DNA of 64,000 nt from Tubulanus polymorphus (lineage: Eukaryota; Animalia; Nemertea), in NCBI RefSeq assembly GCF_964204645.1, contig NC_134030.1:2460778-2524777 (forward strand), in the 5' to 3' direction. Made by a program: the position numbers and the translations under genes. Positions 22,701-62,914 of this stretch are shown piece after piece. How positions within the stretch are numbered: position 1 is the stretch's first letter; each line of letters begins with the position of its first letter. The notes beneath the pieces were generated by a model. It saw only the letters and a list, made by a program, of their open reading frames with translations. It made no database searches and was not told the DNA's origin.

Positions 22701-25700
22701 TCACTGGTTCTCAACTCGGTGAAATATTAAAAGCAGTCTCAACGCTACCGAGTTCCCTGATTCTCAACTCGTTGAAATATTTACAGCGGTCTCAACGCTA
22801 TCGAGTTCCCTGATTCTCAACTCGGTGAAATATTTACAACAGTCTCAACGCTATCGAGTTCCCTGGTTCTCAACCCGGTAAAATATTAAAGGAGTCCCAA
22901 AGGTATAGAGTAAGGTGGTATCATCTATAACAATGATAGAAATCATTATTCTGATTTCCATTTATTTAAAAAGAAATTCTACAAAGCTGTTTATCACCAT
23001 ATTACAATGTTATATATATATATGCATCATCGTGTCCACGTACATCTAAAATTCGGTCTTTTTAAGAAATGAATGATAATAATTCTTCCCTCCGCGATTT
23101 TAATCCTCCGAAAGATTAGCAATTTGAATACGGTTTCAATTACGAAACATATGTTACGTATAAAAGTATGGACTTAATATCAGTTGAATGAGGAACATTA
23201 ATTAGTTCCTGAAATGATTGAATATTTTTGAAAATTATTCTAAAAATTAACGAACTTCTATTTTCGAGAGCGTGTGTCGAAAATTGACCACATGTTTTTA
23301 TATCGCTCTCATGTCGCATTGTACCGTATTTGTGAAATGAATTTTACAAAACTAAAAACCAGAGATTCACGCAGTTTGAATGTTTTGTCAAAATCCATCA
23401 AATAACCGGTGAAATATGATAAACAAGTATCAGAAATAGGAAGAAAAAAATACCCAACGATGTAGGACAAAATACCCTAATAAAATGGCGGCTGTCAACC
23501 GTAAAATGGTTTATTGAGATTAACTGGGTACAAGGCCTCGTTTAGACATTTAGATAATTACGGTTGATAAAACAGTATATCCGCGTTGAAGCGATGTAGA
23601 GAGAATCCCACAATAATAACGAAAAACTGTCCGAAAATGTAACTGAAGCTAGAGTTTATTCAACGTTTCTACTATATCCCAATAGTAATCTTCATTATTG
23701 TGGGATTCTGTCTGCATTTAGATAATGATTGTGGGAGATTAGAAAAATTCAAATTGACATAGAATTTTGTGGTTTAATTGCAGACGGCCTTGTTGTATCT
23801 GATTGGTACTTGTGTCTACGATATTCTGCTACAAAACAACGCATCGCAGTCGCAGGAATGGATAGTGTTTCTTTCGCAAGGAATCGGTGTCGGAATGTCG
23901 GCAGTATTTTGTCTGCTTATAGTCTGGTTGACAGAGCAGTTCCTTCTTATGACGCTCTGCGCAATTCTCGTTTTAAACGGAGTGGCGACGATCGTCTGTG
24001 GCGTCAGCACGAATTTCATCCTGACCAATGTCTGGTTAGCGATAGGTGGCGTAGCAGTCGGATCGGGAGAGGTGGGTACGTACCTTTTATTAGAATCAAA
24101 TTAATCGCATGTTTGTGATTTTTGATTTGAATTAAAAACAAATTTTTTCTTTGAATATCAATGGCCATGTCGATAATAGTAACACAGGGCACAATTCCAA
24201 GTGTGTCAAGATTTGACTCAACTCTGAAAATGAACAAATGTCTTCAATTTCCTTCTATTGTGCTCTTTACAACTTTATGTGTCTTTCTACCTTCTTGTAT
24301 GATTTGATACGAATAATAGAAAAGAATAGAATAAATTTCAACTCTGAGTTAATTCTAACTCACAACTGACTGTGGAACTGGATCCTGAGTTCAGAGTTCA
24401 AACTCACAACTGTGGAACTGCGTACTCCTGTGTTCTGTGTTGAGAGTTAACTCTAACTCACAACTGTATAACTTGATCCTGGGTTCAGAGTTAACTCTAA
24501 CTCGCAACTGTGGAACTGGATCCTGAGTTCAGAGTTAACTCTAACTCGCAACTGTGGAACTGGATCCTGAGTTCAGAGTTAACTCTAACTCACAACTGTT
24601 GAACTGGATCCTGAGTTCAGAGTTAACTATAACTCACAACTGTAGAACTGGATCCTGACTTCAGAGTTAACTATAACTCACAACTTTAGAACTGAATCCT
24701 GAGTTCAGAGTTAACTCACAACTGTGGAACTGGATCTTGACTATTGCTTGGTTTATTATCGTTTCAGTAAATGCGTTGGTTTGTGTCAGCATCTACGAGG
24801 AAAAAAGTGCGCCTATGTTGCAGTTATTGACACTGGCGACAGGTGTCGCCAATATCGGGGGACCCGCGTTTATTGCGCCGTTTCTGTGTCCAGTCGCTTA
24901 CGAAATCGTCAAAGATCGCAATAATATCGAAAACTCCACACAAAAATCTAGTCTCAAAACCATCAATTCATCGATGTCAATCAGCGACGACGTTCATAAT
25001 GATTTCACGGTCAGTAATCCAACAGTCCCTAACTTTATCTACCCGTTTTCGCTCTTTGCCGCCTGTTCGTTTCTCGGAGCCGTCGGGTTTTTGATCCTAT
25101 TTATTTGGGAACGACGAACCGACGAGAATATATTCGACGTTGACGCCGAAAAACTGGAAACTCGACTGATACCCGAAACGAAACGTCGACAGAAGAAACC
25201 GAACGCCCGAATTTTGACTTTGATTTTATCGGGTTGTATGCAGTTTAACATCGGTGGAATTCAGAACGTTCTCGGTAATTTATTGACAACATACGTCGTG
25301 AATTTCGGGCACGATATAAACACGAAGGAAGCCGCTCATCTCGGGACCTTGGTGCAATTGATGTCGATGTTGGCTCGATTTCTGAGCGTCCCGATTAGTT
25401 ACAGATTCGGATCCTCGCCGCCGTTAGGTATCGGGATAGTATTATATCTGATCAGTAGTTTACTGCTATCGTGCGACCCGACCAAGACGCAGTTACTGTA
25501 CGCGGCCTTCCTCGGTCAAGGGCTCGGATCCGGTCCTATATTACCGGCGGTATTAGGCTGGTTACCGGAGAAATATGAGATATCGAAATGGATTCACACG
25601 GTGACGATTCTCCCAGTCCTCGCGGGGCATTTCGCTATGGGTCCTTTAACAGCTAAATGCATGCAGACGTTCGGTCGCTGGTCGTTAATGGTGATTTCTA

Positions 25701-25819
25701 CGATACATGGGTTTTTATTGGTTGTCTGTTTTATCGTAATGAATCGGCTGTTGAGAAAAGATCGTGAAAAATCAGATTCATCAATCAATTCCAAACAAAT
25801 TGAATATAGGTGGAAATAA
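19701..25819 (+). CDS. MFSD4/NaGLT1-like transporter copy 2, ~468 aa; likely exons 19701-19763, 23784-24075, 24768-25819
   Basis: Exons 2 and 3 are intact and in frame. The nearer exon 1 (22229-22291) has lost its GT donor, so the upstream exon 1 with ACG|GTAGGA is the likely partner. Confidence 0.7.
19814..19944. mobile_element. 131-bp Harbinger-like MITE; second copy at 27334-27464; empty sites at ~13918 and ~35408
   Basis: TIRs GGGCCCAGTTTCAC / GTGAAACCGGGCCC with CAG/CTG flanks; absent from the other paralogous introns. Confidence 0.85.
20387..20431 (+). pseudogene. Truncated MFS exon-2 fragment at a recombination junction (also 27911-27955)
   Basis: TTTCAG|ACGGCCTTG...GATATTCTG stops abruptly and joins sequence homologous to 13234 onward (upstream of copy 1). 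Confidence 0.8.
20588..21087. mobile_element. 500-bp foldback MITE with TA target-site duplication (Tc1/mariner-like target)
   Basis: TA[CTGTCTGTCACAC ... GTGTGACAGACAG]TA with >200-bp imperfect inverted arms; empty site AAC-TA-GTG at 28111-28112 in the sister unit. Confidence 0.9.
22229..22291 (+). pseudogene. MFS exon 1 (MRCNCPRV...) with the GT donor destroyed by a deletion (also 29253-29315)
   Basis: ACG|GCAGATTT here versus ACG|GTAGGAAAATATCAGATTT in intact copies; also carries Ala>Asp and Met>Lys changes. Confidence 0.7.
22370..22905. repeat. 53-bp hairpin satellite x~10
   Basis: Same unit as 14123-15640. Confidence 0.95.
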
Positions 25820-33200: not shown

Positions 33201-34322
33201 TTAGAACTGAATCCTGAGTTCAGAGTTAACTCACAACTGTGGAACTGGATCTTGACTATTGCTTGGTTTATTATCGTTTCAGTAAATGCGTTGGTTTGTG
33301 TCAGCATCTACGAGGAAAAAAGTGCGCCTATGTTGCAGTTATTGACACTGGCGACAGGTGTCGCCAATATCGGGGGACCCGCGTTTATTGCGCCGTTTCT
33401 GTGTCCAGTCGCTTACGAAATCGTCAAAGATCGCAATAATATCGAAAACTCCACACAAAAATCTAGTCTCAAAACCATCAATTCATCGATGTCAATCAGC
33501 GACGACGTTCATAATGATTTCACGGTCAGTAATCCAACAGTCCCTAACTTTATCTACCCGTTTTCGCTCTTTGCCGCCTGTTCGTTTCTCGGAGCCGTCG
33601 GGTTTTTGATCCTATTTATTTGGGAACGACGAACCGACGAGAATATATTCGACGTTGACGCCGAAAAACTGGAAACTCGACTGATACCCGAAACGAAACG
33701 TCGACAGAAGAAACCGAACGCCCGAATTTTGACTTTGATTTTATCGGGTTGTATGCAGTTTAACATCGGTGGAATTCAGAACGTTCTCGGTAATTTATTG
33801 ACAACATACGTCGTGAATTTCGGGCACGATATAAACACGAAGGAAGCCGCTCATCTCGGAACCTTGGTGCAATTGATGTTGATGTTGGCTCGATTTCTGA
33901 GCGTCCCGATTAGTTACAGATTCGGATCCTCGCCGCCGTTAGGTATCGGGATAGTATTATATCTGATCAGTAGTTTACTGCTATCGTGCGACCCGACCAA
34001 GACGCAGTTACTGTACGCGGCCTTCCTCGGTCAAGGGTTCGGATCCGGTCCTATATCACCGGCAGTATTAGGCTGGTTACCGGAGAAATATGAGATATCG
34101 AAATGGATTCACACGCTGACGATTCTCCCATTCCTCGCGGGGCATTTCGCTATGGGTCCTTTAACAGCTAAATGCATGCAGATGTTCGGTCGCTGGTCGC
34201 TAATGGTGATTTCTACGATACATGGGTTTTTATTGGTTGTCTGTTTTATCGTAATGAATCGGCTGTTGAGAAAAGATCGTGAAAAATCAGATTCATCAAT
34301 CAAGTCCAAACAAATTGAATAA
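27221..34322 (+). CDS. MFSD4/NaGLT1-like transporter copy 3, ~464 aa; likely exons 27221-27283, 32343-32634, 33283-34322
   Basis: Near-identical to copy 2; TAT>TAA shortens the C-terminus. Confidence 0.7.
29577..31470. repeat. 53-bp hairpin satellite x~35
   Basis: Same unit as 14123-15640. Confidence 0.95.
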
Positions 34323-37316: not shown

Positions 37317-39343
37317 ATGCTGTGTAACTGTCCGAGAGTGATCGCTGCCTTTTCATTGTCGATGACGTGTTTCAGTACGGTAGGAAAATACCAGATTTTA
37401 CACATTTTTATCCAAATTAATAATTATTATAAGTTGTAATGATAGAAAAAAGTTGACGAACGTTGAATTAATATCAAATTGATTTTTAAGTCAGGAAATA
37501 TTTCGTGTACAATAGACTACACGTTAGTCGTAATCCATTTGTCGGTACCACTCTCAAATCGGAGGTAAATTTACTGAAATTCATTTGAAAAACCCTTCAT
37601 TTTTCTTTATTCTCAAATTAGATGTAGCTAATTAGCAAAATATTTACAGCTGTCCCAACGCTACCGAGTAACATAGTTAATCATAAACTTTACGGGTGGA
37701 TTTAGAGGGGGCTCATGGAGCCTGGATCCCTCAATTCTTTGCCAAGATAACATGCTCAGTAAATGGTCAATACTTTCACAATCTTCTTGGGGAGCTACTG
37801 AAGATTAGGAGTATTCGAATTGACATGGAAGTGGTTTAATTTCAGACGGCCTTGTTTTATCTGATTGGTACTTGTGTCTACGATATTCTGCTACAAAACA
37901 ACGCATCGCAGTCGCAGGAATGGATAGTGTTTCTCTCGCAAGGAATCGGTGTCGGAATGTCGGCAGTATTTTGTCTGCTTATAGTCTGGTTGACAGAACA
38001 GTTCCTTCTTATGACGCTCTGCGCAATTCTCGTTTTAAACGGAGTGGCGACGATCGTCTGTGGCGTCAGTACGAATTTCATTCTGACCAATGTCTGGTTA
38101 GCGATAGGTGGCGTAGCGGTCGGATCGGCACAGCTAGGTACCTTTATCTATAATCAAATTAAACGCATATTTTGTGAGACAACTTTAATTTACAACTGTG
38201 GAACTGGATCCTGAGTTCACAGAGTTAATTGTAACACACAACTGTGGAACTGGATCTCCTTGTGTTCAGAATTAACTTACAAACTGGATCCTGACTATTG
38301 CCTGGTTTATTATCGTTTCAGTAAATACGTTGGTTTGTGTCAGCATCTACGAGGAAAAAAGTGCACCGATGTTGCAGTTAATGAACCTAGCGACATGTGT
38401 CGCCTGTATCGGGGGACCCGCGTTTATTGCGCCGTTTCTGTCTCCAGTCGCTTACGAAATCGTCAAAGATCGCAATAATATCGAAAACTCCACGCAAAAA
38501 TCTAATTCTAGTCTAAAAACCATCAATTCATCGATGTCAATCAGCGACGACGTCGATAATAATTTCACGGTCAGTAATCCAACAGTCACTAACTATATCT
38601 ACCCGTTTTCGCTCTTTGCCGCCTGTTCGTTTCTCGGAGCCGTTGGGTTTCTGATCCTATCTATTTGGGAACGACGAACCGACGAGAATATATTCGACGT
38701 TGACGCCGAAAAAGTGGAAACTCGACTGATACCCGAAACGAAACGTCGACAGAAGAAACCGAACGCCCGAATTTTGACTTTGATTTTATCGGGTTGTATG
38801 CAGTTTAACATCGGTGGAATTCAGAACGTTCTCGGTAATTTATTGACAACATACGTCGTGAATTTCGGGCACGATATAAACACGAAGGAAGCCGCTCATC
38901 TCGGCACCTTGGTGCAATTGATGTTGATGTTGGCTCGATTTCTGAGCGTCCCGATTAGTTACAGATTCGGATCCTCGCCGCCGTTAGGTATCGGGATAGT
39001 ATTATATCTGATCAGTAGTTTACTGCTATCGTGCGACACGACCAAGACGCAGTTACTGTACGCGGCCTTCCTCGGTCAAGGGTTCGGATCCGGTCCTATA
39101 TTACCGGCAGTATTAGGCTGGTTACCGGAGAAATATGAGATATCGAAATGGATTCACACGCTGACGATTCTCCCAGTCCTTGCGGGGCATTTCGCTATGG
39201 GTCCTTTAACAGCTAAATGCATGCAGACGTTCGGTCGCTGGTCGCTAATGGTGATTTCTACGATACATGGGTTTTTATTGGTTGTCTGTTTTATCGTAAT
39301 GAATCGGCTGTTGAGAAAAGATCGTGAAAAATCAGATTCATAA
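37317..39343 (+). CDS. MFSD4/NaGLT1-like transporter copy 4, ~458 aa, compact introns; exons 37317-37379, 37846-38137, 38322-39343
   Basis: All GT-AG junctions are intact and in frame (63+292+1022 nt); TCA>TAA truncates the tail. Confidence 0.85.
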
Positions 39344-47872: not shown

Positions 47873-48316
47873 ATAATGCGGGTTGTTCGTCGAGGATACG
47901 TTGAATAGAACGGGGCCGCTGCCACACTTATAGTAGGGTAACATTCGGGTCTAAAGTCATATCATTGGAAATAAACTAATTTAGAATCTAAAGCGAACAA
48001 TGGAAACCCGGTGAAATTAATTTTGAAAATTAATTTTTTTAAGTTGTTACTTCGCGTAGTGCGCCTCGATTGTTTGTCGAAGGGCGGCCATGCGCCATGA
48101 CCAGGTACTCATGCGCCATCTAGTGGAACGCGATTATATTCGCTAGGGCATTTCGAGTCGAAGGACTCGCGCTGGATAGATTTTAATCAAATTTGAGAAG
48201 AAAACCGGGCGTTGTTGTCCGAATGCACACTAGCGATACCTGGTGGATCATCACTTGCCACAGTCGAATGTTAAGAGTCCTAAGTGTTTTTAATTTTGTA
48301 TTTTACAGAGAGAAAG

Positions 48317-49099
48317 ATGCCGATCGGAAACAACATCGTCGATATCGAGGAGTTGATGAAGAACTGGGCGAAAAAATGGTTCGACAAGAACGAGCGCCAC
48401 CAGGTGGAGAAAAAATACGGCAAAATACCCTTCGATAAAATGAACATCGCGATCAATCAATCGAAATTCAGTATCGAGCACGAAACGCCGCTGTACGAAA
48501 AAGAGACGGCGTTAGGGTCGTTCGCGCCACGTACGCACGTTCTCTTTAAATCAACATTCTCGAATACGACCTCTCAAGCGCAGACGTTCAATATGCATAC
48601 GGAACGACGTACGATTTCCAGCGTTAACGTTAACGTTACGGAAGGATTTTGTTTCGGGCAAGAGTTCAGTTTGACGGTCGGTCTTCCGCAGATCGACGCC
48701 GTCGAGGCGAGTATCGGACTCTACCGCGAGGTGAATTTCGAGAAAAGCGCCAACGTCAATAAGGAACAGGAAGTGACGTGGGCGGTCGACTCTCAGATCG
48801 TCGTACCCGCACAGACGACCTCTGTAGCCGAACTGGCGATCAAAGAAGACGAATACAACAGCAAGTTCAACGTGAAGAGCTTCTTCCGCGGCAAATTCTA
48901 CGTGGACTTTATCAAGGATAATGTCGAATTGGCTCGCGCTGTCGGGAGTAATTTGAAAGAGATTTTTACCAGCGATGACGGGTTCAAGGTCGATACTGAA
49001 ACGGGGGATGTTTATTTCGAAACGCACGGTGTTTGCACGTGTAGATTCGGAATCGATCAAGAAGTGAAAATAACCGAAACGAAGAATAAAGTCGATTGA
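48317..49099 (+). CDS. Aerolysin/ETX-MTX2-family (LIN-24-like) beta-pore-forming protein, 260 aa, single coding exon, no signal peptide
   Basis: VLFKSTFSNTTSQAQTFNMHTERRTISS...VTEGF, an amphipathic hairpin region, and TWAVDSQIVVPAQTTSVAELAIKE are typical of the family. Acceptor TTTTACAG ends at 48308, just before ATG 48317. Confidence 0.85.
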   Translation: MPIGNNIVDIEELMKNWAKKWFDKNERHQVEKKYGKIPFDKMNIAINQSKFSIEHETPLYEKETALGSFAPRTHVLFKSTFSNTTSQAQTFNMHTERRTISSVNVNVTEGFCFGQEFSLTVGLPQIDAVEASIGLYREVNFEKSANVNKEQEVTWAVDSQIVVPAQTTSVAELAIKEDEYNSKFNVKSFFRGKFYVDFIKDNVELARAVGSNLKEIFTSDDGFKVDTETGDVYFETHGVCTCRFGIDQEVKITETKNKVD

Positions 49100-49963
49100 A
49101 GATAAAACGGACTAAAATAGAAAAAATCGACTTGATTTTATTGTGATAATTCAATGTTCATCGTTTATAAACCATAGCATATATATTTTATTGCAAATTA
49201 ATCTTTTTGGAACTAAGATAAATGACGACTGTAAAACATATCGTGATGAAAGAATCTTCATTTGAGATTCTTGTGAGAACAAATATCAAAATCAAAAGTT
49301 TCTCGATTTCATTCTAATAAGAGTTTATGAATTGTTGATTGCTTAAAAGATACATATATTATTCAGAATATACTTTAGCGAAACGATGTTAAACATGAAA
49401 TGAAAGATAACGATATACAAACAAGACTGAAAATATATGACAAATACTCTATATACAGATTCAAGATTACTTTTAGTTCTTATTGTTAGTTGTCTCTCAT
49501 CCTGTTTGGATATTACAAGTTGCACATTCGTGGCTGAAAATGAGCTTTAAATTGGTCGCAATTTGTACGATTGGCCATGGAACCAAAACTAGGTTAAAAC
49601 TGGCCTAGAATCCCAAGTCATCAGTCATTATCGGGCCAATTACACAGTTGTGACAAGACTAGTCCTAAGTTGTTATGTTCGCTATAGAAGTAAGATGGTC
49701 TGCAATTGGTCTTACATCCAAGTCATGTCTGTGCAAATGGACCAAGGCCTCGTGCAGTACTATTCCACAGCTGTGTAGATTTATAATAGGAAAATGAGCA
49801 ATTTTCGTTCCGTAGTCGCAGTTGCCGAACAAAAAAAACTAGAAGATAGTAGCGGTGATAGAACAATTTATTCTAATTTCCTCCAATATTTATTTCGATC
49901 AAAGATGTTTATATAATACAGTTTAATGCACAGCAACAGAAACAAAGTAAGGAATCTGTAAAA

Positions 49964-51043
49964 ATGCAGTCCAATAATGTAAGCGACACATTTACCACAA
50001 TAACAAGGCAGCCTTCTCTAAGCTGGTGTCAGGGTGTCAGGAAGAGATACCCAATCCGCTGGAACTATAGATTCAGTGTATTCATGTACCTGGGTTTATA
50101 TTTACCGGCTTCGATTATAGGTATAATGCTCAATATTTTCACGATATTCGTTCTCAGAAAATTGAAAGGCGAATCTTATTTTCTCGTCAAACTTCTCGCG
50201 TTCAACGATCTTTTGTTTATGATGGCGGCTTTCGTTCTGTATCCGCTGAGAACTGCCTATATTTACACCGTGTTAGGGGATATTTTGTTCAGAATCGATG
50301 ACTGGCATTTTGGCGCTGTTTTCATCACGGTAGCCATGCCGTTTTTCTTTATATTTCAAATGACACGTAACTGGTGCACAGTTATTCTAAGTCTGGAAAG
50401 GTTGATCGTAGTTCTATTTCCAATAGCTTCACGTAAAATACCGAAAAAACTGTTGTCAACAGTTGCCTTCTCTGTAGTTTCACTTCTTGCATTTTGTGGA
50501 TTTTTCATTCACTTTATTCCTATAAAGATTATTGGTAAACTGGGCTGCCCGGATACATGGCCTTACATCACAATGCTCAAGACTTGGGTGTCGTATTTGC
50601 CATGGCAAATCCAACAAATATGGCGTTATATATTTGCCGACATTTACCTGTACATGTATGGAACCGTTCTAATCCCTATTTGTAGCTTAGTTCTCATTAA
50701 TTCAATCCTCATTTCTTCGGTGTTAATTCGTAAAATCACCCGACGTTCAGATTTTTTTCAGACCGATCCCTCGTCGAACAAGGAACTGAAAGTTTTAAAA
50801 ATGGTTCTTACAGTTGTAGCAGTGTACATCATCTGCGAGGGTTTCGGTTTCGTCGATCGTATGTCGTATAAACGTTTCTTCAAAATCTACATCGACCCTC
50901 TGGTTCTGCGTAAAATTTCCCTGGCATTTTCTATCATCGATTCGTCGGTAAATTTTTTCATATATTGTTTGACTAACGACAAATTCAAGAAAGTAGCGAT
51001 GATAATCACGTTGAAAAATCGAAAATATTTCATTTCAAAATAA
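49964..51043 (+). CDS. Intronless class A GPCR, FMRFamide-receptor-like/Srw-type, copy 1 (359 aa)
   Basis: 7 TM segments; LNIFTIFVL (TM1), LAFNDLL (TM2), WCTVILSLERLIVVLFP (DRY variant), DSSVNFFIYCL (NPxxY variant). Confidence 0.92.
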   Translation: MQSNNVSDTFTTITRQPSLSWCQGVRKRYPIRWNYRFSVFMYLGLYLPASIIGIMLNIFTIFVLRKLKGESYFLVKLLAFNDLLFMMAAFVLYPLRTAYIYTVLGDILFRIDDWHFGAVFITVAMPFFFIFQMTRNWCTVILSLERLIVVLFPIASRKIPKKLLSTVAFSVVSLLAFCGFFIHFIPIKIIGKLGCPDTWPYITMLKTWVSYLPWQIQQIWRYIFADIYLYMYGTVLIPICSLVLINSILISSVLIRKITRRSDFFQTDPSSNKELKVLKMVLTVVAVYIICEGFGFVDRMSYKRFFKIYIDPLVLRKISLAFSIIDSSVNFFIYCLTNDKFKKVAMIITLKNRKYFISK

Positions 51044-51561
51044 TATACCGGTATCAGAACTCTGTGAGTTTCTCCGGGTCCCTAGCCCTGGGGTTGATGC
51101 TCGATATCGATGTTTCCCAGGAAGAGAGCGTAAATAGATTAGTTCATGGATTCGCTGTCAGGGGCAGCACATGACGGTCGATAATATCTTACACGGCGGC
51201 GCGACATTTCCTAATACCCCGATTTTAAAACAAAAACAAACCAATTAAATATTCATCTTGTTTGTTTTTTGTTTTATTATTTTCGTTTGATATGAGTTAA
51301 TTTATTTAATACAGATATATTATTATCATCGAATATATGTGGCAATTAATTTAAGTTAGCAAACATCTTCGCTTACTCGAATGAATTGTGACCAATGATT
51401 TAATTTGAGTTTCAAGATGGACATATGTTTTCAAATGCAATATGGTTTCAAGATTCGTGTTTCAAAAATGAGTAAAGTTCGATTTGAACGGGATCCTATT
51501 GAGCAGTATATTCTGGAATATGCCGTCCATATCAAATTCTCGATTAAAAATAACGTAAATG

Positions 51562-54500
51562 TTAAGTTTGCAACTTTTTTTCTTCCAAGTCTGCGATAGA
51601 AGGTCCGATCCTGTCGAAATCAATTTCTCCATAAACGGCCGGTTCAACATCCGCCCCGATAATGATTTCCGGTCGTTGCTGCTGCGCGGAATCAGGTTCC
51701 GGCGCGCGTACTGAAACGAAATCTGCATAGATGGCGCCTTCGTCGTTGATTTGCTGGAAAAGAAACAGACGCGAGTTCCTTCGTTACCGTTCAACCATCC
51801 AAAGTCTCTCGTGCATAATTTTGATGAGGAATTTACGAGTCTTAAACAAAATGGATCTCTTTTGATTGACGATTAGTTAGTCTCTCGAGTTCTCATCAAA
51901 GTTGTGCACGATTATCCAAGATGGCCGCCGATGAGAGGATTTGTATTCACACATTAATTAAAATGAAACCCTTACAACGTTCAGTTCACTGCATTCTTTC
52001 TCTGCCGGTGAATCCGGATCGACTTCGATGCTCACTAAACGCGACTCCTTCTTCTCCGCATTCGTCGCTAAAATAACACAAATCAATCTAACTTTACATC
52101 AAGAAACTTTGAATAGACATTTTGATATTGAGGAAGATATTGATTTCTATAGACAATTTATATTGACTTTCTATAATTCAATTGAAAAAAAACTATGTTA
52201 CTGTGTGGGAGATACAGGATTTCAGAGAGCTGCAGGGGTTCGGGTGGAGAAATGGCCTCTGTTTACACTTTGTGATGAATAATCAAAAAATAAAACCCAC
52301 TCCAATTGCGCATTGCTCCTTATACCACTATAGCAACAAACATTTATAACACATTTACCCAATTATTCAATAATCATATCAATCATGAGAAGGTGGAAAA
52401 ACTTGAAAAAGGGCAAGTTTCTGGTGGGCCCTGAATCACAACCCACCCGCCCTCTTACCCCTCCATGACTATATGTTAAGAAACAACTTGAAGAGAGACG
52501 TTTCTGCTCAATTATTAAAGCAGGAATCACCGATAGGATTGAGTCGAAACGTCACTACTCTCCCGTAATTTTTCGATAATATTGCGGGTGATTTCCTTCG
52601 TTCGATAAAGAATATACTGACGTTTATCGTTCAACATTTTGCCGTCCTGTTTCTTTCGTTTTCTCGTGAAAAAGCAACCAACGGCAATGGCCATCAAACA
52701 GCAGCACAGTACACCTGCGATAATAGCTCCCGTAACTGAATTACTGAATCTTCTATCTCCATCTTTCATAGTTCCACCTATTCAAAGTAAACAACATGAT
52801 ACAAAAATAAATTATTATCCGCTAAATCGATTTACGATTAACTGAATTATATGAACGACGACAATTTTTATGAATGAGTGACAACTACAGTCAAAGATCG
52901 TTGGGACCAGGAAAAGTTAATTATCTTTAATTCTCTAAATCAGAAAAAGGAAAATTGCTTTTTTGAAGCTTTCGTACATTTATTCTCGATCAGAAAAATA
53001 TCTTATTGCTAAGCGAGAGAGATCAATGGTGTTACGACGGACTTAAGCGGAATATAATCTGTATATGTCGAAATCGGTGAACTGTTTTTGTGTCGCCTGA
53101 CGCGTCCGATGGTATTTGTGGTGTCGAACCCGGGACGACTGGAACACCTCGCCAGTAACCACAACTGAACCTGTGTCGATTATGTAATTTGAATGGAACA
53201 TGAATTCAATCTTAAGCATTTTCTTTCTGCTTTTGTCTTACCTATTGTTGTTGTTGCTGATGTGGTTGTTGCTGTTGTACCTACAGATTTTTTGTGCTGA
53301 GTCGAACCAGAGACGGCGTCGTGAGGTGCAGTCGATGTTAGTTCAGTAGTGTCACCTAAAATCAAGCAGGTCACACGAACAAAGGTCATATTTTTGCATT
53401 GATTCATTTACATAGTTCAAACAATCGGAAACAAATTTTTCACAATTATGTTATTCAAACGGAACACGAATTCAAGCTTAGTTCAAATACAAGCATTGAA
53501 AAGTCGAAACGTATCTTGTATGTATACCTGTTGTAGCCACTGTTGTCATTATTGCTGTTGTGTTGACAGAATTTGTTTCCTCGCCGTGTACTATTGGCTG
53601 GTTGGCGTTCGCGGAATCATCGTTCACTGTCGAAAATGAACATTTTAACATATCGAATCTACTTCAAAATGTATTCGCTAAAGGATAAGTTGAGCTTAGA
53701 TCATCTTTGAAATATAGTATATTTCATTTCTAATTTTATTTATGACATTTGAGGTTTTAATTACGTATATTTGAGAAAATATCAACAAACCCGTTAACTT
53801 TTTTTCTCTACTTATGCCGACTGCATCACCATCATCATTTTTCCCCTCACAAATCCATTTATCGAACGCATAGTTCCCATTTACTCCAAATATTGTGAGG
53901 ATTACATTCGATCGTCCAGTTTTATTTTCATCAGTACCCTCGATGATGTCTACCCTCGATGGTGTCTGATCTGATACTCCAGTTTCATTACAGTCGATAC
54001 TTTCTTCATCAACCGAGGAACCGGATGTCACATCTTCATTATTACATGTTATTTTGATTGTTCCATTTTTTTGAATAAAGTTAACCTCCTTAGTTTTGGC
54101 GATATCTATTGAACCACAAGTAAAGCTGACTGTGTCTCCAACATTTACAGTTTCCGGGTTTATTTTGAGCTCATATGTACTCCACGCACAATCAACTGTT
54201 TCAACTGGAAAATTCAAAAAGATTCTTTTCCGATCTCCCGATTCCGGAACTAGTTCTAAATACATGGATTTTTTCTGATACTTACTGAGAATAAAAAGAC
54301 GGATCAAAGTAGAAATAAATGCATCAATCTAAAACACAAAATTTACAAAAACTGTACCCTGTTGCCGACGGTAGAAGTTTTATGGCTTTGTCGGTTGTCG
54401 CTATCCCACTTCTGATAGTCGGACGCAGAGTTTGGGTTCAAAACTAAATTAGCCTAAAAAAACATTTTTTTTTTTCAATTTTTTAGCTTTGTATTTCGTC

Positions 54501-54730
54501 ATTTGTTTACATTGAAAACATGTAAAACAATTGATATACCGGTAATCGAATACTTTTATTTCGATTCAAATTCCTTAAACGTGATAGGTAGGAGTGTAAT
54601 CGGTAAATCCTAGATCGTTTATCTGGCCCGGATCCCTAACGGCAGATTGTCCATTCAGGTTATATGAAAGCAGGGAAGTGTGATGTCTCATCACACTTCC
54701 GTGATGAAAGCAATTAAAACTCACCATCAT
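51562..54730 (-). CDS. Type I membrane Ig-domain receptor with mucin stalk and two ITIM/ITSM-like motifs, copy 1, ~371 aa; exons 54730-54725, 54328-54286, 54204-53791, 53626-53528, 53355-53242, 52777-52622, 52067-51976, 51753-51562
   Basis: All junctions are GT-AG and phase-compatible. Signal peptide MMIDAFISTLIRLFILIETVDC; Ig-like exon (VNVGDTVSFTC ... VILTI ... KWICEG); Thr/Ser-rich exons; TM GAIIAGVLCCCLMAIAVGCFF followed by RKRKK; tail with GAIYADF and PAVYGEI. Confidence 0.8.
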
Positions 54731-54939
54731 TTCAACCTTGGAGTAATCAGGTGGATTACTCCAAGTTTCAACTGAGTTCCTCAAACATCTAGCAGCTATA
54801 ATAGACTACAGCGAGACAGCGTGGAGTGATATTTATTTAGACTGATTTTTAGTTCCTATTTCCATAAATAGCTACTGGACCAGGAATATTGACCAGATAC
54901 GGGTATATAACAAATGATATAACAATTGACGCTGAATGA

Positions 54940-55010
54940 ATAAAGCGGAAGTCATGTAAATAAAAGAATCTAACGGTATAATCGCAGTTCTAGGTTTATG
55001 ACGTCATTGC
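54940..55010. promoter_or_regulatory. Candidate bidirectional promoter between IgR (minus) and GPCR (plus); duplicate at ~60780-60850
   Basis: ETS CGGAAGT at 54946-54952 and palindromic CRE ATGACGTCAT at 54998-55007, within the ~490 bp that separate the two start codons. Confidence 0.5.
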
Positions 55011-55220
55011 GTGAGCTGAAATTCGCCAGTGACTTCACAATCATGTATCAGATCATTGAAAAAATATTCCATTCATTTGCGCGTGGACAAAATCTAATGT
55101 AGTAAACCAGCATTTTTTTCATGTGTTCGTATTTTAAGTAAATTATATACTGAATGATAAATGGAATATGTTTATAAATGATGCAAGATAATGAAAATAG
55201 AAACAAACTATATCTGTAAA

Positions 55221-56297
55221 ATGCAGTCGAATAATGTAAGCGACACATTTACCACAATAACGCGGCAGCCTTCTCTAAGCTGGTGTCAGGGTGTCAGGAA
55301 GAGATACCCAATCCGTTGGAACTATAGATTCAGTGTATTCATGTACCTGGGTTTATATTTACCGGCTTCAATTCTAGGTATAATACTCAATATTTTCACG
55401 ATATTCGTTCTCAGAAAATTGAAAGGCGAATCTTATTTTCTCGTCAAACTTCTCGCGTTCAACGATCTTTTGTTTATGATGGCGGCTTTCGTTCTGTATC
55501 CGCTGAGAACTGCCTATATTTACACCGTGTTAGGGGATATTTTGTTCAGAATCGATGACTGGCATTTTGGCGCTGTTTTCATCACGGTAGCCATGCCGTT
55601 CTTCTTTATATTTCAAATGACACGTAACTGGTGCACAGTTATTCTGAGTCTGGAAAGGTTGATCGTAGTTCTATTTCCAATAGCTTCACGTAAAATACCG
55701 AAAAAACTGTTGTCAACAGTTGCCTTCTCTGTAGTAACACTTCTTGCATTTTGTGGGTATTTGATTTACTTTATTCCAATAAAGAATATTGGTAAACTGG
55801 GCTGCCCGGATAGATGGCCTTACATCACAGTGACTACATCTTGGGCGTCGTATTTGTCATGGGATGTTCGTCATCACTGGGGACATATTGCCGACGTTTA
55901 CCTGTACATGTATGGAACCGTTCTAATCCCTATTTGTAGTTTGGTTCTCATCAATTCAATCCTCATTTCTTCGGTGTTAATTCGTAAAATCATCCGACGT
56001 TCAGATTTTTTTCAGACCGATCCCTCGTCGAACAAGGAACTGAAAGTTTTAAAAATGGTTTTTACAGTTGTAGCAGTGTACATCGTCTGCGAGGGTTTCG
56101 GTTTCGTCGATCGTATGAAATACATAAACGTTTTCACAATAAGAATAGATTCGATGGTTCTGCGTAAAATTTCCCTGGCATTTTCTATCATCGATTCGTC
56201 GGTAAATTTTTTCATATATTGTTTGACTAACGACAAATTCAAGAAAGTAGCGATGGAAATCACGTTGAAAAATCGAAAATATTTCATTTCAAAATGA
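55221..56297 (+). CDS. Intronless class A GPCR copy 2 (358 aa)
   Basis: Paralog of 49964-51043; ATG 55221 aligns with the starts of the other copies. Confidence 0.92.
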   Translation: MQSNNVSDTFTTITRQPSLSWCQGVRKRYPIRWNYRFSVFMYLGLYLPASILGIILNIFTIFVLRKLKGESYFLVKLLAFNDLLFMMAAFVLYPLRTAYIYTVLGDILFRIDDWHFGAVFITVAMPFFFIFQMTRNWCTVILSLERLIVVLFPIASRKIPKKLLSTVAFSVVTLLAFCGYLIYFIPIKNIGKLGCPDRWPYITVTTSWASYLSWDVRHHWGHIADVYLYMYGTVLIPICSLVLINSILISSVLIRKIIRRSDFFQTDPSSNKELKVLKMVFTVVAVYIVCEGFGFVDRMKYINVFTIRIDSMVLRKISLAFSIIDSSVNFFIYCLTNDKFKKVAMEITLKNRKYFISK

Positions 56298-56815
56298 TAT
56301 ACCGGTATCAGAACTCTGTGAGTTTCTCCGGGTCCCTGGCCCTGGGGTTGATGCTCGATATCGATGTTTCCCAGGAAGAGAGCGTAAATAGATTAGTTCA
56401 TGGATTCGCTGTCAGGGGCAGCACATGACGGTCGATAATATCTTACACGGCGGCGCGACATTTCCTAATACCCCGATTTTAAAACAAAAACAAACCAATT
56501 AAATATTCATCTTGTTTGTTTTTTGTTTTATTATTTTCGTTTGATATGAGTTAATTTATTTAATACAGATATATTATTATCATCGAATATATGTGGCAAT
56601 TAATTTAAGTTAGCAAACATCTTCGCTTACTCGAATGAATTGTGACCAATGATTTAATTCAAGTTTCAAGATGGACATATGTTTTCAAATGCAATATGGT
56701 TTCAAGATTCGTGTTTCAAAAATGAGTAAAGTTCGATTTGAACGGGATCCTATTGAGCAGTATATTCTGGAATATGCAGTCCATATCAAATTCTCGATTA
56801 AAAATAACGTAAATG

Positions 56816-59800
56816 TTAAGTTTGCAACTTTTTTTCTTCCAAGTCCGCGATAGAAGGTCCGATCCTGTCGAAATCAATTTCTCCATAAACGGCCGGTTCA
56901 ACATCCGCCCCGATAATGATTTCCGGTCGTTGCTGCTGCGCGGAATCAGGTTCCGGCGCGCGTACTGAAACGAAATCTGCATAGATGGCGCCTTCGTCGT
57001 TGATTTGCTGGAAAAGAAACAGACGCGAGTTCCTTCGTTACCGTTCAACCATCCAGTCTCTCGTGCATAATTTTGATGAGGAATTTACGAGTCTTAAACA
57101 AAATGGTTCTCTTTTGATTGACGATTAGTTAGTCTCTCGAGTTCTCATCAAAGTTGTGCACGATTATCCAAGATGGCCGCCGATGAGAGGATTTGTATTC
57201 ACACATTAATTAAAATGAAACCCTTACAACGTTCAGTTCACTGCATTCTTTCTCTGCCGGTGAATCCGGATCGACTTCGATGCTCACTAAACGCGACTCC
57301 TTCTTCTCCGCATTCGTCGCTAAAATAACACAAATCAATCTAACTTTACATCAAGAAACTTTGAATAGACATTTTGATATTGAGGAAGATATTGATTTCT
57401 ATAGACAATTATAGTGACTTTCTATAATTCAATTGAAAAAAAACGATGTTACTGTGTGGGAGATACAGGATTTCAGAGAGCTGCAGGGGTTCGGGTGGAG
57501 AAATGGCCTCTGTTTACACTTTGTGATGAATAATCAAAAAATAAAACCCATTCCAATTGCGCATTGCTCCTTATACCACTATAGCAACAAACATTTATAA
57601 CACATTTACCCAATTATTCAATAATCATATCAATCATGAGAAGGTGGAAAAACTTGAAAAAGGGCAAGTTTCTGGTGGGCCCTGAATCACAACCCACCCG
57701 CCCTCTTACCCCTCCATGACTATATGTTAAGAAACAACTTGAAGAGAGACGTTTCTACTCAATTACGAGAACCGGAATCACCGATAGGATTGAGTCGAAA
57801 CGTCACTACTCTCCCGTAATTTTTCGATAATATTGTGGGTGATTTTCTTCGTTCGATAAAGAATATACTGACGTTTATCGTTCAACATTTTGCCGTCCTG
57901 TTTCTTTCGTTTTCTCGTGAAAAAGAAACCAACGGCAATGGCCATCAAAAAGCAGCACAGTACACCTGCGATAATAGCTCCCGTAACTGAATTACTGAAT
58001 CTTCTATCTCCATCTTTCATAGTTCCACCTATTCAAAGTAAACAACATGATACAAAAATAAATTATTATTGATCGCTAAATCGATTTACGATTAACTGAA
58101 TTATATGAACGACGACATTTTTTATGAATGAGTGACAACTACAGTCAAAGATCGTTGGGACCAGGAAAAGTTAATTATCTTTAATTCTCTCAATCAGAAA
58201 AAGGAAAATTGCTTTTTTGAAGCTTTCGTACATTTATTCTCGATCAGAAAAATATCTTATTGCTAAGCGAGAGAGATCAATGGTGTTACGACGGACTTAA
58301 GCGGAATATAATCTGTATATGTCGAAATCGGTGAACTGTTTTTGTGTCGCCTGACACGTCCGATGGTATTTGTGGTGTCGAACCCGGGACGACTGGAACA
58401 CCTCGCCAGTAACCGCAACTGAACCTGTCTCGATTAAGTAATTTGAATGGAACATGAATTCAATCTTAAGCATTTTCTTTCTGCTTTTGTCTTACCTATT
58501 GTTGTTGTTGCTGATGTCGGCGTTAGTTCAGTAGTGTCACCTAAAATCAAGCAGGTCACACGAACAAAGGTCATATTTTTGCATTGATTCATTTACATAG
58601 TTCAAACAATCGGAAACGAATTTTTCACAATTATGTTATTCAAACGGAACACGAATTCAAGCTTAGTTCAAATACAAGCATTGAAAAGTCGAAACGTATC
58701 TTGTTTGTATACCTGCTGTAGCCACTGTTGTCGTTATTGCTGTTGTGTTGACAGAATTTGTTTCCTCGCCTCGTACTATTGGCTGGTTGGCGTTCGCGGA
58801 ATCATCGTTCACTGTCGAAAATGAACATTTTAACATATCGAATCTACTTCAAAATGTATTCGCTAAAGGATAAGTTGAGCTTAGATCATCTTTGAAATAT
58901 AGTATATTTCATTTCTAATTTTATTTATGACATTTGAGGTTTTAATTACGTATATTTGAGAAAATATCAACAAACCCGTTAACTTTTTTTCTGTACTTTT
59001 GCCGACTAGATCACTATCATTTCCCCCCTCACAAATCCATTTATCGGACGTATAGCTATCTTAAGCATTTTCTTTCTGCTTTTGTCTTACCTATTGTTGT
59101 TGTTGTTGCTGATGTGGTTGTTGCTGTTGTGCCTACAGATTTTTTGTGCTGAGTCGAACCAGACCCGGCGTCGTGAGGTGTAGCGCTTTCATCAGCTGCA
59201 GTCGGCGTTAGTTCAGTAGTGTCACCTAAAATCAAGCAGGTCACACGAACAAAGGTCATATTTTTGCAATGATTCATTTACATAGTTCAAACAATCGGAA
59301 ACGAATTTTTCACAATTATGTTATTTAAACGGAACACGAATTCAAGTTTAGTTCAAATACAAGCATTGAAACGTCGAAACGTATCTTTTATATATACCTG
59401 TTGTAGCCACTGTTGTCGTTATTGCTGTTGTGCTGACAGAATTTGCTTCGTTCGCGGAATCATCGTTCACTGTCGAAAATGAACATTTTAACATATCGAA
59501 TCTACTTCAAAATGTATTCGCTAAAGGATAAGTTGAGCTTAGATCATCTTTGAAATATAGTATATTTCATTTCTAATTTTATTTATGACATTTGAGGTTT
59601 TAATTACGTATATTTGAGAAAATATCAACAAACCCGTTAACTGTTTTTCTCTACTTTTGTCGACTGGATCACCATCATTCCTCCCCTCACAAATCCATTT
59701 ATCGGACGTAGAGTTCTTAATTACTCCCGATATTGTGAGGATTACATTCGATCGTCCAGTTTTATTTTCATAAGTACCCTTGATGCTGTCTACCCTCGAT

Positions 59801-60567
59801 GGTGTCTGATCTGATACTCCAGTTTCATATTTACAGACGATACTTACTTCATCACCCGAGGAATCGGATGTCACATCTTCAGTATTACATGTTATTTTGA
59901 TTGTTCCATTTTTTTGAATAAAGTGAACCTCCTTAGTTTTGGCGATATCTATTGAACCACAAGTAAAGCTGACTGTGTCTCCAACATTTACAGTTTTCGG
60001 GTTTATTTTGAGCTCATATTCACTCCACGCACAATTAATCATTTCAACTGGAAAATTCAAAAAGATTCTTTTCCGATCTCCCGATTCCGGAACTAGTTCT
60101 AAATACATGGATTTTTTCTGATACTTACTGAGAATAAAAAGACGGATCAAAGTAGAAATAAATGCATCAATCTAAAACACAAAATTTACAAAAACTGTAC
60201 CCTGTTGCCGACGGTAGAAGTTTTATGGCTTTGTCGGTTGTCGCTATCCCACTTCTGATAGTCGGACGCAGAGTTTGGGTTCAAAACTAAATTAGCCTAA
60301 AAACATTTTTTTTTTCAATTTTTTAGCTTTGTATTTCGTCATTTGTTTACATTGAAAACATGTAAAACAATTGATATACCGGTAATCGAATACTTTTATT
60401 TCGATTCAAATTCCTTAAACGTGATAGGTAGGAGTGTAATCGGTAATTCCTAGATCGTTAATCTGGCCCGGATCCCTAACGGCAGATTGTCCATTCAGGC
60501 TATATGAAAGCAGGGAAGTGTGATGTCTCATCACACTTCCGTGATGAAAGCAATTAAAACTCACCAT
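56816..60567 (-). CDS. Ig-mucin-TM-ITIM-like receptor copy 2, ~416 aa with duplicated stalk exons; exons 60567-60565, 60171-60129, 60047-59634, 59469-59398, 59225-59091, 58811-58713, 58540-58496, 58028-57873, 57319-57228, 57007-56816
   Basis: Same splice sites as copy 1; all four stalk exons are symmetric phase 1-1 and open. Confidence 0.75.
58976..59056 (-). pseudogene. 3' remnant of a third, different Ig-domain exon (YTSDKWICEGGNDSDLVGKSTEKKLT)
   Basis: Homologous to the end of the Ig exons, keeps the donor, lacks the 5' part; differs from both intact copies. Confidence 0.8.
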
Positions 60568-61059
60568 TATTTCAACCTTGGAGTAATCAGGTGGATTACT
60601 CCAAGTTTCAACTGAGTTCCTCAAACATCTAGCAGCTATAATAGACTACAGCGAGACAGCGTGGAGTGATATTTATTTAGACTGATTTTTAGTTCCTATT
60701 TCCATAAATAGCTACTGGACCAGGAATATTGGCCAGATACGGGTATATAACAAATGATATAACAATTGGCGATGAATGAATAAAGCGGAAGTCATGTAAA
60801 TAAAAGAATCTAACGGTATAATCGCAGTTCTAGGTTTATGACGTCATTGCGTGAGCTGAAATTCGCCAGTGACTTCACAATCATGTATCAGATATCAGTG
60901 AAAAAATATTCCATTCATTTGCGCGTGGACAAAATCTAATGTAGTAAACCAGCATTTTTTTCATGTGTTCGTATTTTAAGTAAATAACTGAATGATAAAT
61001 GGAATATGTTTATAAATGATGCAAGATAATGAAAATAGAAACAAACTATATCTGTAAAA

Positions 61060-62136
61060 ATGCAGTCGAGTAATGTAAGCGACACATTTACCACAATAAC
61101 AAGGCAGCCTTCTCTAAGCTGGTGTCAGGGTGTCAGGAAGAGATACCCAATCCGTTGGAACTATAGATTCAGTGTATTCATGTACCTGGGTTTATATTTA
61201 CCGGCTTCGATTCTAGGTATAATACTCAATATTTTCACGATATTCGTTCTCAGAAAATTGAAAGGCGAATCTTATTTTCTCGTCAAACTTCTCGCGTTCA
61301 ACGATCTTTTGTTTATGATGGCGGCTTTCGTTCTGTATCCGCTGAGAACTGCCTATATTTACACCGTGTTAGGGGATATTTTGTTCAGAATCGATGACTG
61401 GCATTTTGGCGCTGTTTTCATCACGGTAGCCATGCCGTTTTTCTTTATATTTCAAATGACACGTAACTGGTGCACAGTTATTCTGAGTCTGGAAAGGTTG
61501 ATCGTAGTTCTATTTCCAATAGCTTCACGTAAAATACCGAAAAAACTGTTGTCAACAGTTGCCTTCTCTGTAGTAACACTTCTTGCATTTTGTGGGTATT
61601 TGATTTACTTTATTCCAATAAAGAATATTGGTAAACTGGGCTGCCCGGATAGATGGCCTTACATCACAGTGACTACATCTTGGGCGTCGTATTTGTCATG
61701 GGATGTTCGTCATCACTGGGGACATATTGCCGACGTTTACCTGTACATGTATGGAACCGTTCTAATCCCTATTTGTAGTTTGGTTCTCATCAATTCAATC
61801 CTCATTTCTTCGGTGTTAATTCGTAAAATCATCCGACGTTCAGATTTTTTTCAGACCGATCCCTCGTCGAACAAGGAACTGAAAGTTTTAAAAATGGTTT
61901 TTACAGTTGTAGCAGTGTACATCGTCTGCGAGGGTTTCGGTTTCGTCGATCGTATGAAATACATAAACGTTTTCACAATAAGAATAGATTCGATGGTTCT
62001 GCGTAAAATTTCCCTGGCATTTTCTATCATCGATTCGTCGGTAAATTTTTTCATATATTGTTTGACAAACGACAAATTCAAGAAAGTAGCGATGATAATC
62101 ACGTTGAAAAATCGAAAATATTTCATTTCAAAATAA
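61060..62136 (+). CDS. Intronless class A GPCR copy 3 (358 aa)
   Basis: Only 2 aa differences from copy 2; homology to the cassette ends near 62281. Confidence 0.92.
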   Translation: MQSSNVSDTFTTITRQPSLSWCQGVRKRYPIRWNYRFSVFMYLGLYLPASILGIILNIFTIFVLRKLKGESYFLVKLLAFNDLLFMMAAFVLYPLRTAYIYTVLGDILFRIDDWHFGAVFITVAMPFFFIFQMTRNWCTVILSLERLIVVLFPIASRKIPKKLLSTVAFSVVTLLAFCGYLIYFIPIKNIGKLGCPDRWPYITVTTSWASYLSWDVRHHWGHIADVYLYMYGTVLIPICSLVLINSILISSVLIRKIIRRSDFFQTDPSSNKELKVLKMVFTVVAVYIVCEGFGFVDRMKYINVFTIRIDSMVLRKISLAFSIIDSSVNFFIYCLTNDKFKKVAMIITLKNRKYFISK

Positions 62137-62914
62137 TATACCGGTATCAGAACTCTGTGAGTTTCTCCGGGTCCCTAGCCCTGGGGTTGATGCTCGATAT
62201 CGATGTTTCCCAGGAAGAGAGCGTAAATAGATTAGTTCATAGATTCGCTGTCAGGGGCAGCACATGACGGTCGATAATATCATGTTGAAGCCGGGAATGA
62301 AACTAATTCGTACCAAAAATAAACCGTATTAGAATCGTGTACAGTGTTTCCTTGTAGGTTTGAGGCCTGGATAGTCGGCGCGAGTTTTCGTGGATCGAGT
62401 AACCTCTGATCCAGGAGGCCATATCATCCCGGCACAAATTAGTTCACATATTCCCCGCCAATGATTTATTTAGGGGCGGCACTAGACAGCAAAAGCCTAC
62501 GACATTCCGTATATCTACTGTGGCATGCGAGTACTCACGCAATCGCATTTTTACATATAATTTTACACCTCTGCACATTTTTGTGTTTTTGTGCTGTCTA
62601 GAATTTCGTTTGTCTCTTTATTGGACACACCTGATATAAAGAGTGTTATGATAGTAACAAAGTATCAATAAAGTTTACTTTGACATTGAATTGTTACTGT
62701 GGCAAGCGAGTAATCTTTAGGCGTCCCATTACATCATCGATAAACAATTTTGCCGTACTCGAGATATTTAGGCCATTATGTGTTTTTTGACAGAGGTTCT
62801 CTGTTTAATACACTTTTAATCTCAAAGGTAGTTTGTTTGTTGGTTTCTCTCCGAATATGTTAAAGAACAGTTTGATTTCATTGCGCTAGAAAAGACGGAG
62901 CTGTCGATTCCAGA

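Follow-up and report, generated by a model that had tools for sequence, protein, structure and literature searches.

A probable young tandem duplication of intronless class-A-like GPCR genes and an Ig-like receptor gene in the nemertean Tubulanus polymorphus

Concerted evolution from which binding-site segments escape is a familiar feature of the olfactory receptor, MHC and KIR clusters, and type-I receptors composed of immunoglobulin (Ig) and mucin parts are known as the vertebrate TIM (HAVCR) family. Here we analyze a locus with likenesses to both, located in a 64,000-nucleotide stretch of the genome of the nemertean Tubulanus polymorphus (NC_134030.1, positions 2,460,778 to 2,524,777; hereafter the window), where three intronless genes for class-A-like G-protein-coupled receptors (GPCR1, GPCR2 and GPCR3) are interleaved with two genes for Ig-like membrane receptors (IgR1 and IgR2). 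The closest described setting of the GPCRs is provided by a 2025 survey of lophotrochozoan class-A expansions, nemerteans included, which reports tandem genes with heterogeneous extracellular loops (ECLs), and 764-1904 genes in two other nemerteans (PMC11886862). For the Ig-like receptors, PD-1 offers a reference point, with VDYGEL as the core of its ITIM (immunoreceptor tyrosine-based inhibitory motif; PMC8631942), as does the oyster protein CgNCAM1, which possesses three Ig domains, a single FN3 domain and a pair of ITIMs, binds SHIP2 and reduces inflammation (PMC11841013), and which may be regarded as the nearest tested analogue in Lophotrochozoa. We propose, with moderate confidence, that two mutually unrelated receptor genes were copied in a young tandem segmental duplication owing to their position and not to a joint function. 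The evidence so far does not make the locus a novel type of GPCR-plus-Ig recognition system.

Repeat detection and MAFFT alignment of the three copies define window positions 49952-62281 (no strand assigned) as a tandem array of 2.2 units in the order GPCR1> <IgR1 GPCR2> <IgR2 GPCR3>, confirming the arrangement read from the letters in an initial annotation of this DNA. Unit 1 comprises 49954-55210 and unit 2 55211-61049, while the partial unit 3 (61050-62281) holds a GPCR and 145 bp only; a GPCR segment of ~1.23 kb is hence present three times and the remaining 4 kb twice, with start-to-start spacings of 5257 and 5839 bp. Unit 2 exceeds unit 1 by 580-odd bases through an internal duplication of ~660-685 bp (58516-59055 versus 59201-59713). 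Otherwise the units are nearly identical, as first described: non-coding DNA differs by 1.2-1.5%, and the IgR exons other than the Ig-like exon by ~1% (dN = dS = 0.012, for replacement and silent sites, respectively). The start codons of IgR1 and GPCR2 face each other across a head-to-head spacer (54731..55220, no strand), with 491 bp from ATG to ATG, and the equivalent spacer of unit 2 is 60568-61059. The tail-to-tail gap is 518 bp, and both distances agree with the earlier estimates of ~490 and ~520 bp. Homology between the upstream regions of GPCR1 and GPCR2/3 begins ~12 bp before the ATG, placing the left edge of the array at ~49952, and at the right edge (62281) it stops exactly 145 bp past the stop codon of GPCR3. 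Hence, a GPCR lies at both ends of the array, and unequal crossing-over between the flanking GPCRs is therefore enough to copy the IgR along as a passenger. Farther upstream, GPCR1 is preceded by DNA unrelated to that before GPCR2 and GPCR3, and no IgR stands head-to-head with GPCR1.

Such a repeat could also arise in the assembly, if the true locus were GPCR-IgR-GPCR and the two haplotypes of one individual had been threaded through the repeat twice, making IgR1 and IgR2 alleles. The flanking GPCR repeats form a loop open to mis-traversal by assemblers, and the divergence between the units is similar to the ~1.5-2% by which the contigs of a second sample differ from the assembly. Furthermore, the read support was drawn from the Logan contigs of four runs, which are short, and none of these bridges a unit junction. 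However, the window sequence contains no gaps, a whole-assembly search found no further copy of the array on other contigs, and units of 5-6 kb are well below the usual length of HiFi reads, which we assume to be the read type. In run X1, contig depth is 26.8 for the GPCR1-type version of the divergent loop patches described below, 49.9 for the GPCR2/3-type version, 39-43 for the IgR and 66.4 for the shared 5' part of the GPCRs. These depths match the assembled copy numbers of 1:2:2:3 better than two haplotypes threaded in tandem, and the three GPCR values alone (~27 / 50 / 66) fit 1:2:3 better than 1:3:4 or 1:1:2. At 32 of the 36 listed differences, the Logan contigs from the IgR region agree with unit 2, whose letters they carry, and one contig with the GPCR1-type patch is free of differences; both unit types are therefore present in the reads. 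GPCR2 is moreover distinguished from GPCR1 as well as GPCR3 by private differences, and the two patch types recur in the second sample. Mis-assembled haplotypes, a caveat already raised in the initial annotation, are accordingly improbable. Under the duplication that we favor, the similarity between the second-sample difference and the divergence of the units implies that the event is very young, and it may be polymorphic in the population.

The two Ig-like receptor genes are encoded on the minus strand. IgR1 (51562..54730) is LOC141907438, with 371 residues and eight exons as obtained by mapping the RefSeq protein back to the window; its whole-codon exon cores are 54730-54725, 54328-54287, 54202-53792, 53627-53526, 53353-53240, 52775-52623, 52065-51976 and 51753-51565. 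IgR2 (56816..60567) is the uncharacterized RefSeq gene LOC141906896 (XP_074652459/60), with isoforms of 416 and 399 residues, and its ten exons follow the plan of IgR1 plus two extra stalk exons. These two exons were doubled by the internal duplication of ~660-685 bp (58516..59713, minus strand), which also left a relic of the 3' end of the Ig-like exon in an IgR2 intron (58977-59057, minus strand). AG/GT splice sites are present at every junction of both genes. We note that exon 1 of IgR1 (54725-54730, minus strand) encodes only Met-Met before the splice donor, that the first ATG has become ATA in exon 1 of IgR2 (60565-60570, minus strand), leaving a single Met, and that one RefSeq isoform of IgR2 begins inside the Ig-like exon and lacks the signal peptide.

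The encoded proteins start with a hydrophobic N-terminus, interpreted as a signal peptide, followed by the 138-codon Ig-like exon, which encodes five cysteines, and a stalk rich in Ser and Thr (38-40% S+T). The C-terminal part consists of one transmembrane (TM) helix, a basic stop-transfer stretch and a tail of 109 residues, in which Y317 and Y349 are the only tyrosines. Database searches were conducted with exons one at a time or with whole RefSeq proteins. Against 1.84 billion representative proteins, the Ig-like exon yielded one strong match, XP_074653181.1, which is the uncharacterized product of T. polymorphus LOC141907438 itself, and neither this exon nor the TM exon was found elsewhere in the genome, both being confined to the array. 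BLASTP against a genuine Ig_3-repeat protein returned two colinear pieces, in the B-strand region (E = 2e-4) and the F-strand region (E = 0.013), which surround the first and last core cysteines with ~43 extra residues between them. Sequence matches in the PDB are weak (E = 0.013-0.08) and fall on antibody light-chain V domains, and the neighbors in a language-model comparison are Ig receptors (0.89-0.91). The ectodomain therefore appears Ig-like, with an Ig fold that is weakly shown, and we infer an orphan, type-I membrane protein of the Ig-like/mucin-stalk kind.

The substitutions between IgR1 and IgR2 are concentrated in the Ig-like exon (53791..54204 in IgR1, minus strand), where 33 of 411 bases (8.0%) and 20% of the residues differ, corresponding to 29 replacement changes, two silent changes and two one-codon indels. 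The resulting dN of 0.096 and dS of 0.023 give a ratio of 4.1, replacement and silent sites differ in Fisher's test (P = 0.039), and substitutions clearly outnumber those expected at the non-coding rate (P = 1.7e-14). A divergence of this kind could in principle be reached without selection, through gene conversion from an unsampled donor or a locally raised mutation rate, considering that the substitutions are limited to one exon with sharp edges and that GPCR patches in the same unit do resemble old or converted tracts. However, either process would also hit silent sites, and in simulations of 31 mutations with the local transition/transversion ratio ~7.7 silent changes were expected against the two of 31 observed (P for at least 29 replacements = 0.0098). 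Among the changed codons, almost all carry one base difference only, there is no other copy of the exon in the genome, and the relic, which represents its last 80 bases, shares some states with the exon of IgR1 and others with that of IgR2, an intermediate condition as expected if the changes accumulated stepwise. Origin without selection is thus unlikely, and the pattern fits positive selection on the ectodomain, as opposed to a converted tract or relaxed constraint. Were the units alleles, this result would still hold, as allelic rather than paralogous divergence.

The three GPCR genes are intact, intronless open reading frames on the plus strand: GPCR1 (49964..51043, 359 residues), GPCR2 (55221..56297, 358 residues, with an in-frame ATG also at 55191) and GPCR3 (61060..62136, 358 residues), the last member of the array. 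For the Pfam family 7tm_1 (PF00001), the gathering score is 30.5 bits, which GPCR2 and GPCR3 exceed with 32.2 and GPCR1 narrowly misses with 29.9; a profile derived from 24 paralogs matches solved class-A receptors (E = 2e-9). The AlphaFold model based on 24 paralogs displays seven long helices, a hairpin in ECL2 and a C-terminal helix (helix 8), with a predicted local distance difference test (pLDDT) value of 73 and a predicted template modeling (pTM) score of 0.70. At the DRY position, the variant form E145-R146-L147 is invariant across the family, and so are N330-F331 and Y334 at the NPxxY position, where GPCR1 reads N-F-F-I-Y with the proline replaced. As a separate observation, Cys22 of the N-terminal segment and Cys195 of ECL2 are invariant in the 24 paralogs and no conserved cysteine is present at the top of TM3, compatible with a bridge between N-terminus and ECL2 that may stand in place of the usual TM3-ECL2 disulfide. 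The family has at least 113 intronless paralogs in the genome scored at E <= 1e-64, of 1320 candidates; the paralogs are 36-66% identical, and many are arranged in runs on contig C3. GPCR1 found no match among 5.8 billion proteins at E <= 1e-20, a cut-off too strict for distant kin that excludes close relatives only, and an exact look-up of the three open reading frames did not find them in the protein collection. By analogy, the GPCRs are likely members of a lineage-specific class-A expansion and candidate chemoreceptors.

Of the 70 base differences between GPCR1 and GPCR2, 53 are located inside two patches. The first (codons 172-227; 50477..50644, plus strand) covers the ECL2 hairpin together with the tops of TM4 and TM5, with proportions of differing silent (pS) and replacement (pN) sites of 0.25 and 0.19, respectively, relative to GPCR2. 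The second (codons 301-313; 50864..50902, plus strand) corresponds to ECL3, where silent sites are saturated. A frameshift as the origin of the ECL3 patch was ruled out, as the DNA differs at 20 of 39 bases without indels. Outside the patches, pS and pN drop to 0.05 and 0.01. Both patches are extracellular in the AlphaFold model, and they contain 28 of the 35 residues at which GPCR1 is unlike GPCR2/3. GPCR2 and GPCR3, in turn, are separated by eight base differences, three of them replacements, and have identical loops. The diverged extracellular faces of the initial annotation are thus borne out for the Ig-like exon and for the loops of GPCR1 versus GPCR2, but not for those of GPCR2 versus GPCR3.

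The patches and the Ig-like exon differ in the nature of their changes. In the patches, divergence is as high at silent as at replacement sites (pS 0.25 to ~1), many codons have two or three changed bases, and the positions at which GPCR1 and GPCR2 differ are the hypervariable columns of the family (mean entropy 2.02 versus 0.90, P = 2e-10). The nearest paralog pair, at 5.19 Mb of contig C6 and hence on the chromosome of the window, has the same divergence excess in ECL2, silent sites included, and comparison with an outgroup paralog indicates that ECL3 has changed in both the GPCR1 and the GPCR2/3 lineage. Since pS in the Ig-like exon is 0.02, the two sets of changes are of different age. Diversifying selection, initially suggested for both genes, therefore remains a fitting description of the Ig-like exon only, the GPCR patches being old, with saturated silent sites. 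A donor of the patches was not found: DNA queries of 441 bases with both patch types gave no match in the whole genome better than the sister copies, and a k-mer scan of 27 paralogs detected no micro-donor. In the simplest view, GPCR1 on one side and the GPCR2/3 lineage on the other would be older paralogs, with the core and short flanks homogenized by gene conversion and the ligand-facing segments escaping.

The tail exon of IgR1 (51565..51753, minus strand) contains the Y317 and Y349 motifs, and its amino acids are identical in IgR2. It is the only part of the IgR genes with relatives in the genome: a profile search gave 17 matches at ~14 loci on contigs C6, C8 and C2, and in nine aligned tail exons both tyrosines, ~32 residues apart, and their surroundings are invariant. 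In the protein database, the tail region of IgR1 matched only the two genes of the worm itself. The second motif, Y-G-E-(I/L)-D-F, resembles the PD-1 ITIM core, and the first reads T-I-Y-A-R-L in the C8 paralogs, similar to an ITSM (immunoreceptor tyrosine-based switch motif). The inhibitory ITIM receptor first proposed is upheld as far as the two conserved tyrosine motifs are concerned, but IgR1 and IgR2 deviate from the canonical pattern [S/I/V/L]-x-Y-x-x-[I/V/L], with Ala at -2 and Phe at +3 of Y317, and Ala at -2 and Ile at +3 of Y349. The motifs also match the generic YxxPhi sorting signal. By analogy with characterized receptors, the phosphorylated tail module probably docks SH2-domain phosphatases or adaptors. 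One member of the tail family, at 5.18 Mb on C6, shows a plan of three Ig domains and FN3 like oyster CgNCAM1. We also observed seven nearly identical copies of the tail exon (T-I-Y-A-R-L and L-Y-G-E-L-D-F) at 0.90, 2.34, 3.15, 3.53, 4.12 and 4.47 Mb of C8 and 18.49 Mb of C6, which could represent a young dispersed gene family or a repeat-carried gene.

The distribution of the two families across the genome bears on whether their neighborhood is functional. The initial annotation envisaged a linked, possibly co-regulated module of the two receptors. In its fuller form, the head-to-head spacer would drive the IgR together with the neighboring GPCR, the IgR would serve, for example, as co-receptor, escort or brake, and the extracellular faces would diversify jointly. 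In line with this, the facing start codons are 491 bp apart in both units and variation in both genes is mainly extracellular. A second locus moreover combines relatives of both genes: the tail-module receptor at C6:5.1845 Mb, with V-set, Ig and FN3 exons, is, besides the array, the only tail-module locus near one of the 113 scored GPCRs, and the GPCRs 9 kb away at 5.19 Mb are the closest paralogs of GPCR1-3 (66% and 64% identity). However, these are on the same strand as the receptor, an orientation different from that in the array, and a lectin-like gene lies between. More than 100 members of the GPCR family are sited away from any IgR relative, ~10 of the 12 remaining tail-module loci have none of the 113 scored GPCRs within 100 kb, and no GPCR was found in the +-1.5 kb around other tail-module loci. 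With the Ig-like and TM exons restricted to the array, the constant linkage expected of a module is not what we observe.

The array itself also argues against a module. GPCR1 has no spacer and is preceded by unrelated DNA. Covariation is absent from the head-to-head pairs, as the identical loops of GPCR2 and GPCR3 stand beside different IgRs; in the tail-to-tail pairs both genes have changed, but the GPCR differences are far older than those of the Ig-like exon. ECL variation is furthermore general to the whole GPCR family, as it is in the surveyed expansions (PMC11886862). A complex prediction for GPCR1 with the IgR1 ectodomain scored 0.01, a value weighing neither for nor against binding. 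Taken together, we regard a functional two-receptor module as unlikely. Still somewhat less probable is a working pair whose genes share one divergent promoter, in which the IgR would assist the GPCR as co-receptor or escort, or inhibit it as a partner, and the locus at 5.18-5.19 Mb would be a remnant of an old linkage. The MHC-class-Ib M10 proteins, which accompany V2R pheromone receptors, provide a loose likeness for such a pair, and, if true, it would constitute an undescribed invertebrate recognition system. Separately, we note that C6:5176000-5196300 is a receptor-rich stretch, which contains two Srw/7tm_1-type GPCRs of another family, the V-set/Ig/Ig/FN3 tail-module receptor, the lectin-like gene and the closest paralogs of GPCR1-3; this grouping could go back to an older linkage or to chance.

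Based on the array anatomy and the substitution patterns, we infer the following recombination history for the positional duplication proposed here. In the ancestral state, one Ig-like receptor gene would have been flanked on either side by a paralogous copy of an intronless class-A GPCR, with gene conversion holding the two copies nearly identical except for the ligand-facing segments in ECL2 and ECL3. Unequal crossing-over between the two GPCR copies would then have added one [IgR + GPCR] unit, followed by the ~1.2-1.5% divergence seen today. After the duplication, the Ig-like exon presumably gained ~27 amino-acid replacements and two indels with hardly any silent change, as could be explained by positive selection on ligand binding, and the mucin-like stalk of IgR2 was likely lengthened through the internal exon duplication. 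The GPCRs would signal separately from the IgR, as chemoreceptor-type receptors.

Several points weigh against this account. The unit junctions are unbridged by contigs, and the second sample is about as different from the assembly as the units are from each other, both as detailed above. The Ig domain itself is a weak match in Pfam (Ig_3 / ig, E = 0.03-0.04, below the cut-offs), a single-sequence AlphaFold model of the ectodomain reached a pLDDT of only 36, and the test for selection on the Ig-like exon is built on two sequences. Under uniform placement, proximity within 9 kb as at the second locus has a probability of ~7e-4, by rough estimate. The co-occurrence at 5.18-5.19 Mb could hence be a hint of older linkage, although this would still be a single historical event that lends no independent support for function.

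Two further features were detected upstream of the array. A 271-residue open reading frame just upstream of GPCR1 (48284-49099, plus strand) matches Pfam ETX_MTX2, an aerolysin-type pore-forming toxin fold (E = 1e-7, 32 bits versus a cut-off of 22). A match of this type is plausible in nemerteans, whose phylum is known for toxins. Further upstream, four long open reading frames on the plus strand (17185-18327, 24737-25819, 33252-34322 and 38330-39343) all have matches in the Major Facilitator Superfamily, with E from 1e-8 to 1e-11, and look like tandem transporter genes or exons.

The locus offers a clean, datable case of receptor repertoire growth in a little-studied phylum, and suggests that recombination between abundant GPCR paralogs can carry along an unrelated gene, creating a new paralog pair. 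The replacements in the Ig-like exon, six-fold over the neutral background and confined to the ectodomain, would be among the strongest simple signs of adaptive change. IgR1, IgR2 and the tail family of ~14 loci are further reasonable candidates for recognition receptors of nemerteans, of immune type or otherwise, in a phylum in which such receptors have barely been studied.

Comparison with described systems places both genes in familiar surroundings. Like the Alr genes of Hydractinia (10.1101/2022.03.04.482883), IgR1 and IgR2 are membrane proteins of the immunoglobulin superfamily type with divergent N-terminal Ig-like domains, tyrosine motifs and tandem duplication; they differ in that there are two copies instead of a large complex, and no sign of polymorphism, homophilic binding or an allorecognition phenotype was seen here. 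The TIM (HAVCR) receptors are built likewise, with a single Ig-like domain at the N-terminus, a stalk rich in Ser and Thr, a single TM helix and a short tail that bears tyrosine motifs. However, no sequence relationship is detectable, the searches having returned only the two genes of the worm, and the ~43 extra residues between the core cysteines set the IgR apart. With the ITIM/ITSM receptors PD-1 (PMC8631942) and CgNCAM1 (PMC11841013), the tails have in common two conserved tyrosines ~32 residues apart and a Y-G-E-I/L-D-F motif near the PD-1 core, whereas the motifs of IgR1 and IgR2 have Ala at -2, the first also with Phe at +3, and phosphatase recruitment is putative here. The GPCRs resemble olfactory receptor, MHC and KIR clusters in that neighboring paralogs are homogenized and ligand-contact segments stay distinct, silent sites included, although conversion is deduced here from three copies and one outgroup pair, without a direct donor or tract. 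They also agree with the lophotrochozoan class-A expansions (PMC11886862): although Tubulanus is not among the nemerteans named there, and the trio is isolated with an unrelated gene interleaved, the genes are intronless and rhodopsin-type, belong to a large, species-restricted family with at least 113 members and tandem arrangement, have a long, heterogeneous ECL2 and a variable ECL3, and are without close relatives in other taxa. Both genes of the array are of known kinds, namely lineage-specific class-A GPCRs and immunoglobulin superfamily-type receptors with tyrosine-motif tails.

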